A stretch of 63,086 nt of DNA, filler included, from Hyphochytrium catenoides (taxonomy: Eukaryota; Protista; Hyphochytriomycota), in the NCBI GenBank assembly GCA_900088475.1. It is 10 parts of 10 records of this genome, joined end to end, with 100 filler letters (N's around TTAATTAATTAA, not from the genome) between each part and the next. Parts side by side here need not be neighbours in the genome. Positions count along the whole stretch, not along the records: positions 24,270 to 35,729 come from FLMG01001129.1; 9 more parts are not named here. One strand, 5' to 3'. Under the pieces are notes generated by a model, which searched no databases, was not told the origin of the DNA, and was given only the letters and a program-made list of their open reading frames with translations. The number at the start of each line of letters is the position of its first letter. The stretch's first letter is position 1. Position numbers and translations under genes: made by a program. Of the stretch, positions 24,270 to 36,033 are shown piece after piece.

Positions 24270-24633
24270 GGAGGAGAACTAGCAGCAGCGTCAGTGGTGG
24301 CTCGAGAAAGGGGAAGAGATGAAAGGGAGGACGAAGAAGAAGAGAGTGCAGAGCAGCAAGAAAGGGAGCAGAAGGGGCCAACCGGGATACTTTCACTTTT
24401 TATAAAATGCTGTTCTATCTATATTTTGGGGTTGATGTGGCCTTTATTATGAAGAAAATTAGTAGAGAGTGTGAAATCGACTATTGTTTGAAGAAGATGA
24501 AAGAAGCAAATATGTACTTGTACTACGAAGCAACAAAAGAGAATGGAGAAAGAGCTAAAATAGGCCAAGAAGAAAGAAGGAAGATCAGAGTAGCAGGACC
24601 CTTTGGCAAGAAACTGAACTTATTATTTATTGC

Positions 24634-24860
24634 TACTACTTTTATTATCCAGTTTTAAGAATTAAAGAAGTACTACAAATCTCTACACTACCATCCTAGG
24701 AATAAACCTACCACTAGTTCTGACGCTTTCTTGAAGCCGATTACTACTTTTATTATCCAGTTTTAAAAAGAATTAAAGAAGTACTACAAATCTCTACACT
24801 ACCATCCTAGGAAAAAAACCTACCACTAGTTCTTACGCTTTCTTGAAGCCGATTACTACT
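24634..24860. repeat. Direct tandem duplication with a ~108-112 bp unit, two copies plus a few bases of a third
   Basis: 'tactacttttattatccagtttta...gctttcttgaagccgat' starts at 24634 and again at 24742, nearly identical. Confidence 0.95.
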
Positions 24861-26699
24861 ATACTAAGTCTCCTCCGTTTGCTGCTCCTCCTCTCCTTCT
24901 TCGCCGCACCCTCTGCTGCTATTTATTGGTGCTGCTGTAGATGTTTATTGCTACTACTATCGCTACTAACAGACTAATTCTAGAAGAAGAAAAGAGAAGA
25001 AGAAGAAGAGGAAGAAGAAGAGAAGAAAAGCTAAGAAGCCTTAGGCTCTTCCATCATCTCAGCTCGAACCTGCTCCCTGCTCATCATCAGTAAAAGAAGA
25101 ATCATAGTTGATTTCCTCAGAATTGATGAGCGGCGAAGAACGAGGAGGAGGAGGTGAACCATCAGCAACCATGTCATCATCAGCAATCATGTCATCGCCA
25201 GCAACCATCATGTCAACACCGTCGAGCTCAGCCGTCGCGAGACAAGCAAGAGAAGGGTCCAGCTGTTCAGGAGGAACGCGCTTCAAGATTTGAAGTGCAT
25301 TTTCTTCGTGAATGGCCAAAGACACTCGCGTATGAAGGCGTAGGCCCATAGCTAAACGAGACCATATTCTTATGAAAAATAAGGGCGAAGAAGGGCTACC
25401 TTCCCCTGAAATCAGTTCCTTTCCTTAGGGAAATGTTGCGAATCTGGCCTCCTTCTGTAGGAATATTATCTATGGAGTTCTAGGACCTCTGGACGTCCCA
25501 AAGACGAACACCATCCTTCTGAGGTTTTCTCATCCGAACCCCCATAAGCCTTAGTTAATATTCCTAGAGGCCCAGATTCCCAACTTTACCCTAGAGCTGT
25601 ATTCATCCCTTTGCCTGACAATTGTCGCTGAGAGATGAAAGAGTAAGGGGAGTTTAGCTGGGAGTTTGGTTACTTCTGTAGCGCCTTATCCTTGAATTGT
25701 CGCATTTCCCGCTTCTGCCCCGCACTACTCGCACACAATGTTCACGCTTGTCCAAGAGGCCCCGCAGATTAGAGACGCGGATGGCGGGGAAAGCGGGCAA
25801 TCAACGACTGAGAAGGAGGATAATAATAGAGGCCGACCGTCCGCCCTTCCTTCCTTTCCAACAGATGCTGCTGACTGTCCACTGCCAGCGGGCGGATACT
25901 ATGGATGGCGTAGGTGCTGCTGATAGAATGTCTACTAGCTAGCATCCCGGCTGCGGCTGCCTTGTGACTGATGGCATCTGTCCTGTTACTATCACCAGCA
26001 GCAGAGCAGAGTGAGGGAAAGCAGCTGGGGATCATCATCATCAACCACCTAATGTCTCAAGTGATAGAACCCACTCCTACTAACACTCGATGCCTGGTGC
26101 TGCTGCTGCTGCTGCAGCGACTTGGTAGAGCTTCCCTAGGGAAGGAAGTTGCTGGCGGACTAGTAGAACGAGTCACGATGCCTCCTGTTCTTCGGCGTAG
26201 CGCTAACAACTCTTCGAGGGGAGTTTCTTTTTGGCAAGAAAGCAACGAATTATCGCAATGCTGCGGCGACCGACTTTTTTGCTGCAGGTGTCATCACGCT
26301 TCACCTCACTCACAGCAACAAGGATACACATCACCACCACGGGTGAGCATTGTCCTGTGCGGTCAGTGGGCTTTGATGATGAGATTGGCCGCTCTCTTCT
26401 GATGCTTGATTGAAGGTTCCTAAAAGACGACCCAAAAAACCATTGCTCCTCGCTCGCTCATCCTTCCCAGAAGAAGAACAGAAGAAGAGAAATTTTTGTC
26501 GCCGTCCGCCCTTCAACAATCATGAGATTGGCCGCAGTCCTGATGCCGCTTGATGAAAGGGATCTTCCCTCACCAACAACTGCTCCGTCTCCGAAAAGCT
26601 GTCGTGGCAGTGGCAGCTTCTCAGGCGGCGGCCTCTTATTGGGAAACATCTTTACCCCTCAATACAAGGCTGGCTTTTGGCGATGCCGTTGGCTGTGTT

Positions 26700-27910
26700 C
26701 TGGGAAATGATGGTCGCTGTTCTGAAGCTTCAGTGAAGAAGGTTTTAGGCCAACAATGGCGGCTCCATCTGAGAAAAGCAAGAAGCTTAGCAGTAGCGCC
26801 TCGCCCTCCGCCATTCTGTCTCAGACTTCCTCCTCTTTCATTAACACGCGCCGTGATTGGTCTTTCCGTGGTGGTGGGCTTTCGGCTTGTGAGAATGGTG
26901 GATGGTGCTCTGCTGCTTGATGATTCGAGGACCAGACGTGCGGGAAGCAGCACCTCACAGTCGGCCACCAATCCTCCTTCTTCGAAAGCTTTATTCATAT
27001 TAGCACACCCTACGGTTGATGGTCATTGTGTGCGCGGGGCTTTACCTGTGGGATTGGACGCTGCTCTGACGATATGTTGAAGGTTCTTAAGCCAACACTT
27101 TGCTCATGCTGAACAACCTTGATAGTAGAGCCCGCCTCGGCGTTTACTCGGGAACTTTTCTCATAAGCACACGCAGGGTTGGCCATTCCGTGGGCTTGTG
27201 TTTGTGAGATTGGTCGCTGTCCTGATACTGGGCTGATGTTTCCCAAGTCGTAGCGCCAAAACGTTTGCTCATTTCTCCTTAAAGCATTCGCCGCAACGCT
27301 TGTAAGCATCACAGCTGCCCTTTCTTCGAGAATCCCTCTCGTCAACGCACTCATATTGGTTCTAAGTGGTTCATTGCGTGGACTTTGTGATGGTGAGGCT
27401 GGTCGCTGTTCTGCTTTCTGAGTGAAGCTTTCCTAGGGCAAACTCTGCATCATTCTCTTCCAGGTTGGTTCTTCTAAGTCGGTCGCTGTTCTGATATCTG
27501 AGTGAAGCTTTCGTCGAGGAACAAAGCCTTGAACATTCTCTCTCAAGTTGGCTCTAAGTTGGTCATTGCTTGGTGGACTTTGTGATGGTGAGGCTGGCCG
27601 CTGTTCTGACATCTGAGTGAAGCTTTCCTCGAAAGTCTGGATCATCCTCTCAACAAATGGTTGATCTAAGTTCGTCATTGTGGGGTGGACGTTGTGATTG
27701 TGAGGCTGCCTGGTCGCTCTGTTCTGATATGTGAGTGAAGCTTTCCTAGGGCAAAACGTTGATCAATCTTGAAAAAAAGTCTTGACAGTAGCGCCGCTTT
27801 TGCTCTTCTTCTGGAAAGAAGGCAACCTATCCCATTGGTCCTACACATAATGCGGTTGGTGTCATTGTGTTTGTGGGCTTGGGATCCTGGTCTCTTCGCT
27901 GTTTTGCTGT
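26700..27910 (-). repeat. Degenerate repeat array encoding (ESFTQ)xSEQRP-like peptide repeats, probably a pseudogene
   Basis: Core 'ggtcgctgttctga..tctgagtgaagctttcc' at ~27401, 27481, 27596 and 27712, with weaker copies at ~26712, 27056, 27212 and 27896. Minus-strand ORFs read SEQRP/SGQRP repeatedly but in shifting frames with stops. Confidence 0.7.
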
Positions 27911-28024
27911 TATATTCAGGGTTCCTAGGCAACAACTCTGCTCATTCTGAAAAAAGCGAAGTCGGCAGCACCTCCGTCGCCCTTCTCCCAAGGAATTGCC
28001 CTCGTTAACCCATAAGTTGTCAAC

Positions 28025-28654
28025 ATGAAGCTCTATATTGCTGGGATTGCTGCCGCTCTTTTAGCCGTCGTTGGCGCGGCTGAGGATGTCGCCAATGCTC
28101 CACCACCGAAAGACACCATCAAGGTCGACCTTGTCACTCTGAATGGGTCTGGCTGCCCTCCTGGCTCCGCGACTGTCGCGGTCGCTCCCGACAACACGGC
28201 CTTCACTGTCACGTACAGCTCCTACATGGCTGCTGCAGGCTACGGCACTAAGCCGACGGATTCCAGAAGGAACTGCCAGCTGGCCGTTCAGCTGCAGATT
28301 CCTCAAGGCTTCACCTATGCCATCGCAAAGGCTGACTACAGAGGATTTGCTAGCCTTGCTGATGGTGCCACGGCTTCTCAACGCGCTTCTTACTACTTCC
28401 AGGGCATGTCTGAAACCACTCGCACGACTCATCTGTTCCACGGCCCAATGGACGACAACTGGCAGATCACCGACGTCGCAGATGTAGCTGCTATCGTCTA
28501 CCATCCTTGCGGTGCTAAGAGAAACCTTAATCTCAACACTGAGATCCGAGTGAACAAGGGCACCTCTGACCCTTACTCGACCAGCTATGTCGCCATTGAT
28601 TCCACTGATGTTTCCTTCAGCACTATCTACCACTTCCATTGGAAGCACTGCTAA
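28025..28654 (+). CDS. Secreted DUF4360-family protein (actinobacterial type), intronless
   Basis: Signal peptide 'MKLYIAGIAAALLAVVGAA'; motifs NGSGCPPG, DNTAFTVTYS, RRNCQL, PQGFTYAI..ADYRGFA, YYFQG, GPMDDNWQ, PCG..RNLNLNTEIRV, DSTD..STIYHFHWKHC*. Start context is 'caacATG'. Confidence 0.93.
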   Translation: MKLYIAGIAAALLAVVGAAEDVANAPPPKDTIKVDLVTLNGSGCPPGSATVAVAPDNTAFTVTYSSYMAAAGYGTKPTDSRRNCQLAVQLQIPQGFTYAIAKADYRGFASLADGATASQRASYYFQGMSETTRTTHLFHGPMDDNWQITDVADVAAIVYHPCGAKRNLNLNTEIRVNKGTSDPYSTSYVAIDSTDVSFSTIYHFHWKHC

Positions 28655-28776
28655 GCTAAGGGCTCATCAGTTCCCGCTCTGCTGAAAGATGATGGCAGCA
28701 ACCATTACCGTCTATAGCCGTAGTTTAGGACAGGGCAGAGGAAGTAATAACTCCATCATGAAGCAAGTAGTAGTGC

Positions 28777-29274
28777 TCAATGGATGATGATAAGCAGCAA
28801 AGAGAGTAGTGCCACAAAGTTACTTCTGTCAAGGTCAATGCATTTCTTAGGTTGATATAATGAAAAAGTTGGCGTCAGGTATACTCCGTATCTCGCAGCA
28901 ACTATCTCAGACGATGATGAGGATGTTCCCAGCAGTGGACGACCTGCTACTCGTTGCTCTTCTCTAGCCATACTTCAAGGGGAAGAGAACTCTTTGTTCG
29001 TTGCTTCACATTGGTACTTGGCCAGGGACTGGACGGTGGCTGCTTTGACTTCACCGGAGTTTATCGGGACTCTGATCATGAACCTACTCTCTGAGTCTCT
29101 ATCAATAAAAGAGTAGTCAGCCTGCCGCGGTGTGGGTGCTGCTGTCTCTTTGACTATAATCTCCAGCAGCAGGAGATCCAAGAAGTGAGAGCACACGAGG
29201 GCCTTTGAGCAGCGCCATACTCCTCTTGCAGGTCGCCATCCCGCCTTTGCCTCAAGCTCCTCTTGCATCATCAA
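28777..29274 (-). pseudogene. Possible decayed PD-(D/E)xK nuclease-fold gene
   Basis: Two adjacent ORFs read 'RQADYSF...PINSGEVKAATVQSLAKYQ' and then 'EEQRVAGRPLLG'. The D...E-x-K...Q spacing resembles REase folds. Broken by stops; weak evidence. Confidence 0.3.
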
Positions 29275-29949
29275 GACAACGGTCCAATAGCTAGTAGTAG
29301 ACGGACCAGTGGTGGGATCAACGCTCGGTCTTCCTACTCCAGTGATTTTATGTCACCTTGGGTTGGGATCATCAACCCGTGTCCTGCACGATCAACAGCG
29401 GTCCGCAGTCTTTAATAGCCATCAATGAGTTATCCTCGCTAGCAAATAACGGAGAAGTATCGCACGGAAAGCGTGGGCATCTTGGCAGAAGCGTCTTCGA
29501 CTTCCGACTGTTCATGAGCTATAGAGGAGCTTCTTTATAATAAGATCATTCTTCTTCAAGCCTCTCATCACCCTGCAGGGCTCCAGCTCTTCCCCAAGGT
29601 TCACATAAGGAAAACAGCCCAGATATCCTGCTGATCAACGAAGATAATCGCTTCATTGGTTGCAGCTAACTCGCTCCATTATTTTATTATTCAGCAGAGG
29701 GTGCAGCAGGTGATGTCTCCATCACGCAGTCCCAAGCGTTCCTCTTCCTAACCTCATCGTGTAAGACGATAAGGGTACAAAGTAGGAAAGTACTTCGACC
29801 TTGGTAAAGCCCGAACAGAGCACTGCGGCAATGGTCCCAACATTTGAGAGAAAGGAACGAGAGAGAGAAAGAGAGACAGGGTAAGTGAGGAAGAGAGAGG
29901 AGAAAGAGCGTGGGTATGGAAGCAGACAAGGAAAGAGGGGAAGAGAGAA

Positions 29950-31358
29950 AGAAAGAGGGAGAGAGAGACTAAGAGAGGGGAGGGAACACTTCTAAGTAGA
30001 GATGTAAGGCATGGTGTCCACCATGCACTGAGCTTGCACGCCCGCTCAGAATCCTCCTCCATAAGCTGATACATTGTGAGTCTCCTTCATGCGCCGGGAG
30101 CACGAAGGAAGAACCACTTTCCGCACTGCTAACTGAAAAGGCCTTGTAGAAGATCTGTCTTCCTCAGATGGACCTCTTGCTTCTTAGAAGAACCAAGGCT
30201 TATGGACGTGAAGGAATACACTGTCCGATGACCAGAAGAGGAACGACATCGACCTGATGGGCGACCGTTCTCACGTGCTCTAGAGCGAGAGAGAGAAGAC
30301 AGTCCCCGCATCAGGGCAACGCGCGGGAAAGGGAGACGAAAGGATAGAGAAGTGAGAGAGAGAGAGAGAGCTTGCAAGAAAACTCTCGGCCCAGGGGACG
30401 GTAGACATCCTCGACTTGACGGCGTCCACTATGTCCCTTCATCCTCCGGAGAATACCGGTACCAGCCAATATCCGCGTCTTGCTCGTCTTGATATCTCTC
30501 GCATTCTCTCTCTCTGCTGCCGAACCAAGTCTTGAGCTCCATCCTGGTCGACGCCGCGAGCGACTCCTCTCCTGCCTTTCTTGCCCATCTTTCCAAGGAG
30601 GTCAGCATCTGCCACTCCGCTAAGAGAGAGAGAAGACAGAGGGAGACAGAAAAAAAGGGAGAGACAAAGGAGTGAGCAGAAGCAGATGATGGTAAGCCTC
30701 CGGAGTTTTGAGCAGTAGGGACTGACTACACAGGGGAGACACACTCGGAAAAGGATGAATTGCACCGAGAGAAAAAAAGAAAAAACAGAGAGAGGAAGAG
30801 AGAGAGAGAGAGATATTAGAGGTCAGCGCTGCACCTCTTAGAAGGTGTTTAGCTGTGTCTGGGTCTCCTTCTCTGTTGATCTCTCTCCTGAGCTGCTGCA
30901 GCCCATCCAACGCCGTCTGCAATGCTCCCACGGCCTCCTGAAAGAGCTCCTCTCGAGCATAAAGAGAGGCCAAGCTTGCGTGAGAGAGAGACTCCGCTTC
31001 TAAGTCTCCTGGCAGGGGAGAGAGAAAGAGAAAAGTGTGAGAGAAGAGGTATGGCCATGTTGTATGCGTAGGGGAAGCCAGGATGCGATGACGGAGGAAG
31101 AAAAGTAAAAGCCCCAGGAGAAAGAGTGAAAAGGGAGAGAGAGAGAATAAAAATAAGAAAGAGAGAGAGACACGCACAGCGGTCGGCTCAAAATCGAAGT
31201 AAAGACAAAACTATCGCTTTCGGAGAAAGGACAAATCATGATGAGTGTGGTTGTTCGCCGGTAGAAATAAAGGGACAAACAAACAAAAATGGAGGGAGAG
31301 AAAGACAAGGCCACAGAGAGAGAGAGGAAGAGAGAGAGGAAGAGAGAAAAAGAGAGAG

Positions 31359-31389
<31 letters not shown>

Positions 31390-32385
31390 AAGAGACCGAC
31401 AGGGGACAAGACACATTCAAAGTGAGTGAGAAGAGAGCAGAAGAGGACACAGTGCTGGGCTAGAGTCACACTGCTCGAAAAGTACATGACTAATGAAGAG
31501 AGAGAGAAAAAGAGAGAGACTGGCAAAAAGAATGAAGCCAAAGCCTTAAAAAGAGTGAGCGAGAAGGTTGTCAAAACGCAGGAGAGAGAGGAAAGTCTTA
31601 CCGTCTGCCATCCCTAGCTCGCAAGCCATAAGGAAAGCTTGTTCCGCTGCCTCCATTCTCTCTCCCTCCTTCGCTAGCGTAGTGCCCAGCTCCAGCGCTA
31701 GACGGGCAGGACTACTTCTCTTTCCCTTCTCTCTTTCCTTGCGTCTCTCTTCTTCTCCTCTCTCTTTATCTACACTCGTTTCGGACACTCCTCCCCCCAG
31801 TTGCTTGTCTCGAAAGGCTGAGTTGCTCCTGGAGGAGACAGAAAGCTTTCCAAAAGCCACAATGATGCCGAGAGAGAGAGAAGAGAGAGGAGAGAAAGAA
31901 GGGTAACGCGAGAAAAAAGGGTGAGAGACGAGGATGTAGCAAGGAGAGGGGGAGAGAGAGTAAATGGAAAACAGATGGTCACCTCTCACAGTGCCAATGG
32001 GAAAGTAAAGCTACAGAAAACAGAGAGAAGACATAAGAGTGGGAGAGAGAGAGAGAAAAAGAAGAGAGAGAGAGAGAGGGGAGCACAAAAGGGAGGAGTC
32101 TAGCTTACCGCATAGTACTTGAGCCGACCGACATGGCCATAGGGTTGTCCTTCTCTTCCTGCCATAACGAAGCTTCTATAGACAGGCATTGTGCCATAAT
32201 AGTCTCCTCCTTCTCCCTCTCCGAAGTCAAGTCTCTCTCTCTCTCCTCCAGAGAGAATATCACGCCGGAGGAGGTAGTCTCCCTATGAAAATCAAAAGAA
32301 AAGATCAACCAGGATGAGGTAGCGGGAGAAACGGCACGAAGAAGGAAGAGAGCCGCGACCAAGACGAAGGGACTATTTGTTTCTT

Positions 32386-32424
<39 letters not shown>

Positions 32425-32873
32425 GAGAGGGAAAGACACCGGCAGCGAGAACAAAAATAGAGCAAGGAGAGATTGAGAAAGCGAGGAGAAAAGGGGGGAA
32501 GAAGCCAAAGGAACTATGAAAGGGAAAAGGATAGGAAGCAGTGACTGTCCGAGCAGTGATGCACGTACTGCTGGACTGCGATAAGGGAGAGAGAGGCTGC
32601 GTCGCCGCGTCTCTCTCTCACCCCTCTCCTCTGGTGTCCCTACTGCTGGAGGGGAAGAGGGGAACGGCGAAGAGGGAGAAAGAAAGAGATTTGCCTGGAA
32701 ACCAAGGGGCTTTACAGGACGTGATCATGTCAGGCGGAAGAGCGAAAGGGAGAGAGAGAGTGAGGGAGACGAGCTTGGTCAAAATCTGGAGAAAGGGACT
32801 GGGAAGCAGGCAACGGAAGGGAAGGGCCCTTCGATCTAGAGTCTGATGAACGAGCAAGACCAAACCAATAGAG

Positions 32874-32923
<50 letters not shown>

Positions 32924-34427
32924 AAGAGAGAGGCCAGGTTCTACCTCTATGGTCAGTTTCCCATAGCTCCGCCACTGATCCACAAAGTCAGAGAGAGAGC
33001 CGTAGGGCCCAGAACCTCCTAGAAAATAGCCCTATTCACAGTGCAAGTAGGGTCGAAAGAGAGAGAGAAAGAGCCGGGGAAGCACCAAGTAAGACAAGGG
33101 AAAGCGAGAGAGAGAGAGAGAGAGAGAGCAGAGAGAAAGAGAGAGCGGTCAAGGAAAGAGTATGGAGGTAGAGTACAGGGCAAAAACGGGTCCTTCTCCA
33201 TAGCTTTCAGAAGCAGGAAAGAGCGGTAGAGAAGAACACGAAGAGATGAAAGGACTGAAGATTGGAGATGTCGAAGAGAGATATAAAGAGGCTCAGAGAT
33301 GGCCAGAAAGAGAGAGAGAGAGAGAGAAAAGGTTGACACCAAAGGAGAAAAGAGCTCAGACACAAAAGGCCGGTAGAGCAGGGGTGAAATTCAAAAGACG
33401 AAGACTAACAGAGAGACCGAGGGAANNNNNNNNNNNNNNNNNNNNNNNNNNNNNNNNNNNNNNNNNNNNNNNNNNNNNNGGGGTAGAGGGAGAGAGAGAA
33501 AGAGAAAGAGGAAAAGAGAGAGAAAGAGAGAGAAAGACCACGTAATAAACCAATGCCAGTCAAGAGAAGGGACCAGGAGGAGGAGGAATGAGTCCTGTCT
33601 GACCAATTTTACCTCTTTCTCTCTGTATTTGAACTGGTAATGCACAACCTTATCCTTCCCTCCTGAGACCCGAGAGAGGACGAAGGAAGGAGGAAAAGAA
33701 GAGCTCACGCGCACTAGAAAAGTGCCTGCAGAGGAAATAAAAAGAAAGAAAAAATTCATTAGCTCTTCTCTCTCTTTCTCTCTCCTAGCTTGCTATTCTC
33801 AAACAAGAATGACGTTACGCTGACACAATCTTCCTTTCTTTTTCGTGTCTCTCTCTCTCTCTCCCTCTCTTTCCCTCTTATCAACTGAGGGTGAATATAT
33901 CTCTGTTGTTCCCTGTCTCTTCCTTCTCCTACCTGGCACTAGTCTCCCTTCCGTTTCAAGAAAGAGTTCTTCTTCTGCTTCCTTCCTCGTCATTCTCCCA
34001 CGGAACCAGGGAGGCACTCTTTTCTCCCCTCTTTCTTCTACAAGTGACTCATATATCTGATAACAAAGAAGGAGAGACGAGAGAGGAGGCCATAAGAAAA
34101 GGAAGAGAGAGAAAGAGAGTGAGATTATGAGGTGACATATTAGGACGGAGAGATAAGAACACCGCTGGCGGGAAGAGAGAAGAGAGAGAGAGAGAGACAA
34201 AGAAAGACAGAGCAGGAGGGTGCAAGAAAGGGGAGTGAAAAGGGCAAGAAAGAGAGAGAGAGAGAGAGAGGGAGGGGGAGAGACAAAGGAGAACTAATGA
34301 TTAAAGAGGTAAGAAGCTCCATATCAAAAGGCGAGTGAACGGGAGGAAGAAGTCAGGGGAAGATCAGCTGCTGGCCGCGAGGGAATATACGGCCAAGGAG
34401 GAGACAGAACCTCCCAAGCCTAGACTT

Positions 34428-34461
<34 letters not shown>

Positions 34462-34725
34462 AGGGAAGGAAGGGAGATAGGAAGGGAGTGCGAGGAGCCG
34501 ACAGGCAGGGGAGAGGAGAAAGAGGGAGAAAGAGACTTTGTCGGAGATGAGATACTGGGAGCTGAGGAGAGAGACATTTCAGCAAAGAGACGAAGTGGAA
34601 GAGAGAGTCGTAAGTAAGAGAAGCCAGGGGTTGCAAGCCAACGAACCCGCTGTAGCCAGCCATTCATAGGCCCGAAGAGGTGTTCCAGACCCGATAGCTA
34701 CGGGACAGAGTGAGAGAGGGAGAGA

Positions 34726-34778
<53 letters not shown>

Positions 34779-35545
34779 GGGAGAGGGGCCCGGGAAAACA
34801 GGTCGGCGAGAGTTAGAGAAGAGGGACAAAGAGAGAGGGGGAGATGAAAATGAGAGAGTCAGAAAAAAGGAAAGAGGGAGAGAGAGAAAGAGTGAGACCG
34901 TGAGAAAGCGAGAGCTTCAAAAAATGGAGGAGAAGGGAAAATGGAAAGCGAGGATCAGGGAAGGAGAAACGGGAGCTGCGGGTGAGAGCAATATAGAATA
35001 GAGGCCGAAAGAGGGCAGCAAGAGACTTAGACAGAAAGGAACCAGGAGAGAGAAAGAGAGAGAGAGGAAGTTCTAGAAGAGAGATAGAGGTGATCCCGTC
35101 TGAGGAAGTAGAGAGGGCAAGAACAGCAGCTGCACTACCTGATCGAGAGTCACCATCTCTTCTGTCTTTTCCAGCAAACCGTTTTCCCTCTTTCTCATAC
35201 CCAAAGAGAGAGACAGAATTTCAACGAAAAGAGGAGATGCAGTCTGTCTCTCTCCCTCTTCTTCAGCGGAAGACAAGGACGATGAGAGCTACATGTGGGA
35301 GATGATGAAAGGACGAGGGAGAGAGAGAGAGGGAGAGAGAGGGGAGAGAGAGAGAGGGGAGAGAGAGAGAGGGGAGAGAGAGAGAGAGACTACGTTAGTA
35401 TAACTTGTGTGAAGATCTCGCGACCTTGGAAGCACGGAAGAGAAGAGAGAAAGAGAGAGAGTGGGGGACTAGTCTACCTGCAGGCATGGCAGAAGATCCT
35501 CTGAAAGGGAGATGTCAGGTCTTTCGCCGTAACGCGACCGCCTGC
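29950..35545 (-). CDS. Multi-exon SH2-domain protein (EF-hand-like linker and SH2, then a helical TPR-like C-terminal region), 5' part missing
   Basis: Spliced exons give 'VTLDQ|LSGLEHLFGPMNGWLQR|IYESLVEERGEKRVPPWFRGRMTRKEAEEEL..VP|GTFLVRVSSSFPPSFVLS..VVHYQF' (exons 33933-34056 and 33613-33725) and 'GPYGSLSDFVDQWRSYGKL' (32945-33018). Downstream exons include 'ALELGTTLAKEGERMEAAEQAFLMA' and 'HASLASLYAREELFQEAVGALQTAL'. The 3' end is uncertain. Confidence 0.8.
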
Positions 35546-36033
35546 ACGAGGAGAAAGGGCGGCGTTAGGGGAGAGAAGCAGAGAGAGAGAGAGAGAGAGA
35601 GAGAGCAAGAAAGGAGAGGAAGAGAGCAAAAAAAGAAGTAAAAGAAAGACAGAAGGAAAGGAGAAGAAGTGCGGGGAAACAGGAAATGACGTCTGTGTGT
35701 GTGTGTGTGTGAGGAGAGAGAGAGAGAGANNNNNNNNNNNNNNNNNNNNNNNNNNNNNNNNNNNNNNNNNNNNTTAATTAATTAANNNNNNNNNNNNNNN
35801 NNNNNNNNNNNNNNNNNNNNNNNNNNNNNTCTCTTTCCTCTCTTTCTCTCTCGGTCTCTCGGCTCTGATTCTCGCCACTTCCTGCCCATGCCGAACAAAT
35901 CACTTGGGCGGGTTGGTGATCGGTAGTCTGAGAGGAGTTTCTCCTTCTGACTCTCTCTCTCTCTCCTTCTCTCTCTCTCCCTATCTCTCTCTTCTCTTTC
36001 TTTCTCTTTCCCTCTCTTTTCCTCTTTTCTCTC

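Follow-up and report, generated by a model that had tools for sequence, protein, structure and literature searches.

A probable horizontally acquired DUF4360 gene of actinomycete type in eukaryotic DNA of the Hyphochytrium catenoides assembly

The window analyzed here is a stretch of 63,086 nucleotides, filler included, from the genome assembly of the protist Hyphochytrium catenoides (GCA_900088475.1), in which ten parts of ten records are joined end to end. One of these parts, positions 24270–35729 (record FLMG01001129.1), carries an open reading frame whose product belongs to DUF4360, a large secreted family of actinomycetes, predatory bacteria, fungi and some algae. The locus raises the question of how a protein of bacterial type came to lie in this assembly, whether as a working gene of a eukaryote, and then from which source, or as a stray or dying piece of sequence. 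A preliminary description, made from the DNA alone, had proposed an old, ameliorated horizontal transfer kept under selection. The results below, in particular the actinomycete-only nearest relatives, the host-like third-position composition, a strongly supported sister copy and a low rate of amino acid change relative to silent change, uphold that proposal, and a functional DUF4360 gene acquired horizontally from an actinomycete is the probable explanation of the locus.

The open reading frame at 28025–28654 on the plus strand is the longest in its piece and runs from an ATG to a stop codon, encoding 209 residues. Its product matches the PF14273 profile over positions 2–178 of 178 with 224 bits (E 1.5e-66, cut-off 27 bits), and such a full-profile match means that the frame is not a product of chance. 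Bacterial homologs align to it end to end and without gaps; thus, the coding sequence is intronless as well as intact, as had been described. The start codon at 28025 stands in the context caacATG, which had been read as a eukaryotic start. Residues 3–18 are hydrophobic (mean Kyte-Doolittle value of 2.34) and are followed by a polar stretch, and the AlphaFold2 (AF2) model has a low pLDDT of 51–54 across residues 1–20. By its hydropathy and the small residues near positions 17–19, the N-terminus fits the signal peptide predicted earlier; the putative peptide extends from residue 1 to about residue 19 (28025–28081), with small residues at −3/−1 around A18/A19. The DUF4360 domain occupies residues 31–209 (28115–28651) and contains C44, C84, C162 and C209, all of which are in invariant columns of a 44-sequence alignment. 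Of the 34 family columns with a conservation of 90% or more, 32 are retained, and the other two differ by the conservative exchanges K-to-R and L-to-I.

The nearest relatives of this protein are all from Actinomycetes. A word-indexed search of 5.8 billion clusters gave 2675 matches, and every named match among the best 120 is from an actinomycete, at 58–68% identity over nearly the whole length; the genera include Allokutzneria, Actinophytocola, Phytohabitans, Streptomyces, Kitasatospora, Lentzea, Micromonospora and others. Actinomycete proteins of the family, such as those of the first five of these genera, are also like the window protein in their length of about 210–225 residues, their single domain, their signal-like N-terminus and their four cysteines. 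When 1.84 billion representatives were searched exhaustively with HMMER, 3735 clusters were returned, and names were given to 30 of the best 150; all named representatives with a single domain are from Actinomycetes. Three of the named proteins have two domains; they belong to Chara braunii, to a chytrid, Quaeritorhiza haematococci, and to a bacterium, Pseudobacteriovorax. Their single domains reach 120–136 bits and 36–37% identity, compared to 275–306 bits for the actinomycete matches. In 185,579 bacterial and archaeal species genomes, relatives are encoded at no fewer than 591 loci, of which the best 80 are all from Actinomycetota (Kitasatosporales 67, Pseudonocardiales 8, Micromonosporales 4, unassigned 1). 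A search of viral contigs for relatives, which would have pointed to a viral route, found none.

The earlier statement that the protein is closer to actinomycete than to fungal proteins was borne out in part: it holds against the domains of the chytrid, with the identities given above, while the ascomycete proteins lay outside the direct comparison. Ascomycete clusters are the nearest by features in a language-model protein atlas, but this nearness was not taken as kinship, since alignment scores and trees disagree with it.

The best match overall is a protein (P0001, 64% identical) encoded on a 981-base Logan contig (L001) from run SRR26283930. Its N-terminus bears a predicted signal peptide visibly of the same type as that of the window protein. 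The gene has a GC content at third positions (GC3) of 0.59 and lies between non-coding flanks on a contig with a GC content of 0.51; no polyA tail is seen on this contig, which may be a transcript. A profile of the window protein and P0001 found no third member in the 5.8 billion clusters, where P0001 scored 460 bits and the next match 324 bits. Thirteen metagenome loci considered as further eukaryote-type copies were rejected, since all have a GC3 of at least 0.76 and are bacterial. The eukaryote-like copies of actinomycete type found are therefore two only, the window gene and the copy on L001.

The trees left out ascomycete DUF4360 sequences. In the maximum-likelihood tree of 85 rows (IQ-TREE, LG+C20+F+G4 PMSF; supports as UFBoot/SH-aLRT), the window protein and P0001 form a pair (100/99). 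This pair is placed within a 53-row set together with Phytohabitans, Actinophytocola and an unclassified actinomycete (86/96), within a 74-row crown set (95/81), and within a 79-row clade of otherwise actinomycete sequences that is separate from Chara, the chytrid and Pseudobacteriovorax (100/99). The pair is likewise nested in a FastTree tree of 258 rows and in a quick IQ-TREE tree of 122 rows. On these sequence comparisons, the assignment of the window protein to the actinomycete-type clade is firm, and the maximum-likelihood tree favors a donor from a group that holds members of Micromonosporales and Pseudonocardiales.

The alternative that survives best, although it is unlikely, concerns the history of the gene rather than its presence: an old eukaryotic DUF4360 lineage could be the sister of, or the donor to, the actinomycete proteins, with the root on the stem of the pair, or the two copies could stem from separate transfers out of related actinomycetes. 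Two AU tests are compatible with it. Keeping the 77 bacterial rows together, so that the distant outgroups attach beside the pair, gives a tree no less likely than the free one (p 0.50), and when the distant outgroups are omitted, a tree that excludes the pair from the crown loses 7.9 log-likelihood units without being rejected (p 0.33). Additionally, DUF4360 proteins are present in fungi, in Chara and in a chytrid (bioRxiv 10.1101/2023.02.12.528195). However, the outgroup stem and the stem of the pair are both long, conditions under which long-branch attraction is expected. The distances favor nesting of the pair, provided that rates are roughly equal: the median identity of the window protein to crown bacteria is 62%, compared to 65% of crown members among themselves, and its identity to the deep, non-crown paralogs is 44%, the same as that of the crown. 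The probable direction from bacterium to eukaryote is founded mainly on numbers and not on a resolved root, since members of the actinomycete-type clade run to thousands in several orders, against two sequences on the eukaryotic side. Two separate transfers are opposed by the monophyly of the pair and by the signal-peptide features that its members share.

Base composition agrees with residence in a eukaryote. Third codon positions of the window gene comprise C 89, T 64, G 39 and A 17, or a GC3 of 0.61, in line with the preference for T- and C-ending codons, short of an extreme GC3, that had been pointed out. In contrast, 98 bacterial copies (5, plus 13 metagenome loci and 80 genome loci, the last with a median of 0.94) have values of 0.76–0.99. 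The window gene and the copy on L001 are thus far outside the bacterial range and near the neighboring host exons, which have a GC content of 0.54 and a GC3 of 0.55 in a sample of 256 codons. The GC content of the frame as a whole is 0.55 and that of its flanks 0.48–0.50. The composition of the window gene is host-adapted and unlike that of the donors, and amelioration to this extent requires long residence. The settings differ as well: the bacterial homologs that were fetched lie on gene-dense contigs, often beside a second DUF4360 gene and once in an array of eight, whereas the window gene is single and lies among repeats and exons.

Upstream of the gene, a degenerate tandem repeat array extends over 26388–27950 (repeat families D1/D2; TRF period 80 at 27401–27564), the final copies of which, judged by eye, reach the start codon. 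Its recurring core of about 28–57 bases is repeated at an irregular spacing of 80–344 bases, and the minus-strand open reading frames of the array share a short recurring peptide motif without a Pfam match. The array may be what is left of a repetitive gene, or else a minisatellite, and would now supply the 5′ region of the DUF4360 gene. Downstream, on the minus strand, four exon-like segments (30442–30624, 30836–31006, 31603–31707 and 32111–32224; borders approximate) have frames free of stops and a GC3 of 0.49–0.63. Further on, also on the minus strand, two SH2-domain exons (33933–34017 and 33613–33725; Pfam SH2, E 1.8e-6) are joined across a GT...AG intron with a pyrimidine tract, its splice sites being read from the sequence. 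The four segments are taken to belong to the same gene as the SH2 exons. The exons of this gene were scanned singly, not as a joined spliced model, and the segments gave a weak hint of TPR_7 (E 0.12). A protein that combines SH2 and TPR domains is known from amoebozoans.

A run of N at 33427–33469, within a simple-repeat intron, is an assembly gap that separates the DUF4360 gene from the SH2 exons. The two had been said to share one gap-free stretch, which is incorrect for the SH2 exons. What stands is that, in the assembly, the open reading frame is contiguous, with no gap, with the upstream repeats and with the segments at 30442–32224, and that the SH2 exons are on the same scaffold. A Pfam scan of open reading frames in the 3.7 kb upstream and the 1 kb downstream of the gene gave no match and no bacterial gene, in keeping with the decayed surroundings described before. 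Neither tRNA or Rfam families nor conserved genes were found in the piece at 24270–35729. The piece is intron-rich eukaryotic DNA with GT-AG introns that are largely simple repeats, and its flanks have no bacterial look. In Physarum polycephalum, which has 18 SH2 proteins, introns are often extended repeats flanked by splice signals and assembly gaps fall at simple repeats (PMC4758236); the resemblance of the present piece is a likeness only.

These surroundings bear on a second alternative, in which a fragment of a bacterial contaminant was misjoined into a eukaryotic scaffold. Such an artefact would account for the high identity to actinomycete proteins, the scaffold does contain an N gap, and the exact protein has no match in the gene-position collection. 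It is nevertheless very improbable. A GC3 of 0.61 is foreign to all 98 bacterial copies; with no bacterial neighbor within kilobases, a misjoin would need to have hit the two ends of the gene precisely; the closest bacterial sequence among the matches listed is no more than 68% identical to the window protein; and the sister copy, which is alike in composition and lies between non-coding flanks, comes from an independent data set.

Selection supports a resident gene in function. Between the window gene and the copy on L001, pN is 0.224 and pS is 0.725, with synonymous sites saturated, and a pN so far below pS indicates that the coding sequence has been held by purifying selection. That the frame is instead a recently inserted, non-functional remnant, still open by chance, would suit the repeats and the DNA without recognizable genes all round and a third-position usage unlike that of the neighboring exons, but it can hardly be maintained given this pN, the conserved columns and four cysteines retained, the long residence, with the frame open throughout, that full amelioration needs, and a tblastn search for paralogs, confined to the piece at 24270–35729, that found no extra copy or decayed remnant.

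The AF2 model calculated from the 44-sequence alignment has a pLDDT of 91.4 and an all-beta fold. The top Foldseek match of this confidently predicted beta-sandwich is Bd1399 of Bdellovibrio (PDB code 8OKH, E 2e-7), which is also the sole strong structural match with VIA (8okh_A, Z 13.2, rmsd 3.2 Å, 158 of 166 residues). The next VIA matches, viral jelly-rolls, carbohydrate-binding modules and TNF-like lectins, have Z scores of 8.6 or less, which a common architecture can produce. CBM4, CBM27, CBM61, PLTL and BC2L-C share the general jelly-roll beta-sandwich (Foldseek E 4e-4 to 5e-3; VIA Z 6.5–7.8), but these scores are within reach of unrelated beta-sandwiches and the likeness is one of fold only, with no shared sequence or binding residues shown. 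To our knowledge, no binding or catalytic residue has been reported for DUF4360, and no activity has been assigned to the family.

Bd1399, the only solved DUF4360-like structure, has the same elongated beta-sandwich as the model and is secreted, as is predicted for the window protein; it is implicated in prey invasion, and two conserved disulfides lock its fold (PMC10792529). One of them joins a strand with an N-terminal loop, and the other joins the C-terminus with a late loop. This pattern would recur in the window protein, where by analogy C44 would pair with C84 and C162 with C209. The sequence identity between the two proteins is only 10–11%, and the link to prey invasion belongs to Bd1399 alone. 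Eukaryotic members of the family are known as well. Fungal DUF4360 proteins are secreted and induced during host colonization, and two of them trigger plant cell death (PMC7170778; bioRxiv 10.64898/2026.09.14.751338). Verticillium VdSCP27 and Parastagonospora PnSsp1, secreted PF14273 members with four cysteines (same sources), can be set beside the window protein by description. Chara has at least 21 expressed DUF4360 genes, which have been described as fungus-like. The genes of Chara braunii and the chytrid are likewise eukaryotic and encode secreted family members with four cysteines (same sources and bioRxiv 10.1101/2023.02.12.528195), but their products, which have two domains, are placed outside the actinomycete clade.

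Given that its fold resembles those of lectins and carbohydrate-binding modules, and that predatory bacteria and invasive fungi use the family, the window protein can tentatively be viewed as a secreted, disulfide-locked, non-catalytic protein that binds other microbes at their surface or wall. In the scheme that results for a transfer from an actinomycete, a eukaryotic lineage would have taken up a DUF4360 gene from a member of the class Actinomycetes before the window copy and the SRR26283930 copy split. The base composition of the gene would then have drifted to a host-like state, a signal peptide functional in the host would have been kept or evolved at the N-terminus, and the gene would have stayed under purifying selection. 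The product would be a secreted jelly-roll-like beta-sandwich of about 190 residues with two disulfides, which may act outside the cell on microbial prey or competitors, binding a component of their surface or wall without catalysis. A bolder version, in which a phagotrophic or otherwise microbe-interacting eukaryote has, to judge by the saturated synonymous sites, very long kept the captured actinomycete protein as an extracellular factor that recognizes or attacks the walls of prey or competitors, is rather doubtful. If true, it would parallel the use of this fold by the predator Bdellovibrio and by invasive fungi, and the same secreted module would repeatedly, in different domains of life, have been put to use in attacks of one cell on another.

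The gene adds to the cases of transfer from bacterium to eukaryote an actinomycete-type copy that is ameliorated and selected, and it offers a second, genetically distant setting in which the extracellular role of DUF4360 can be asked about. Since microbial eukaryotes are well known to carry genes of bacterial origin, and the family is known too, the case is solid and not surprising.

Several further features were observed in the bacterial and eukaryotic relatives. A Logan contig with neighbors of Mycobacteriales type (MurB, TtfA, GH76) carries eight DUF4360 genes head-to-tail (L003:7374–13983), and adjacent pairs are present in Phytohabitans (L007) and on a JGI contig; the family expands locally in actinomycetes. 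The two-domain proteins (P0121, P0123 and P0122/P0276) are those of Quaeritorhiza haematococci, a parasite of algae, Chara braunii and Pseudobacteriovorax. Both domains of each protein pair together in the tree, which suggests that their internal duplications were independent.

Other observations concern the piece itself. Third positions show a preference for C and T in the DUF4360 gene and for G and A in the exons at 30442–34017, a contrast that may reflect amino-acid make-up or expression level. Between 29700 and 35729, the introns of the minus-strand gene consist mostly of (GA)n/(TC)n, and the plus strand is therefore strongly purine-skewed. In the AT-richer left end of the piece, at 24634–24860, about 111 bases are directly duplicated with 96–98% identity (families D5–D7).
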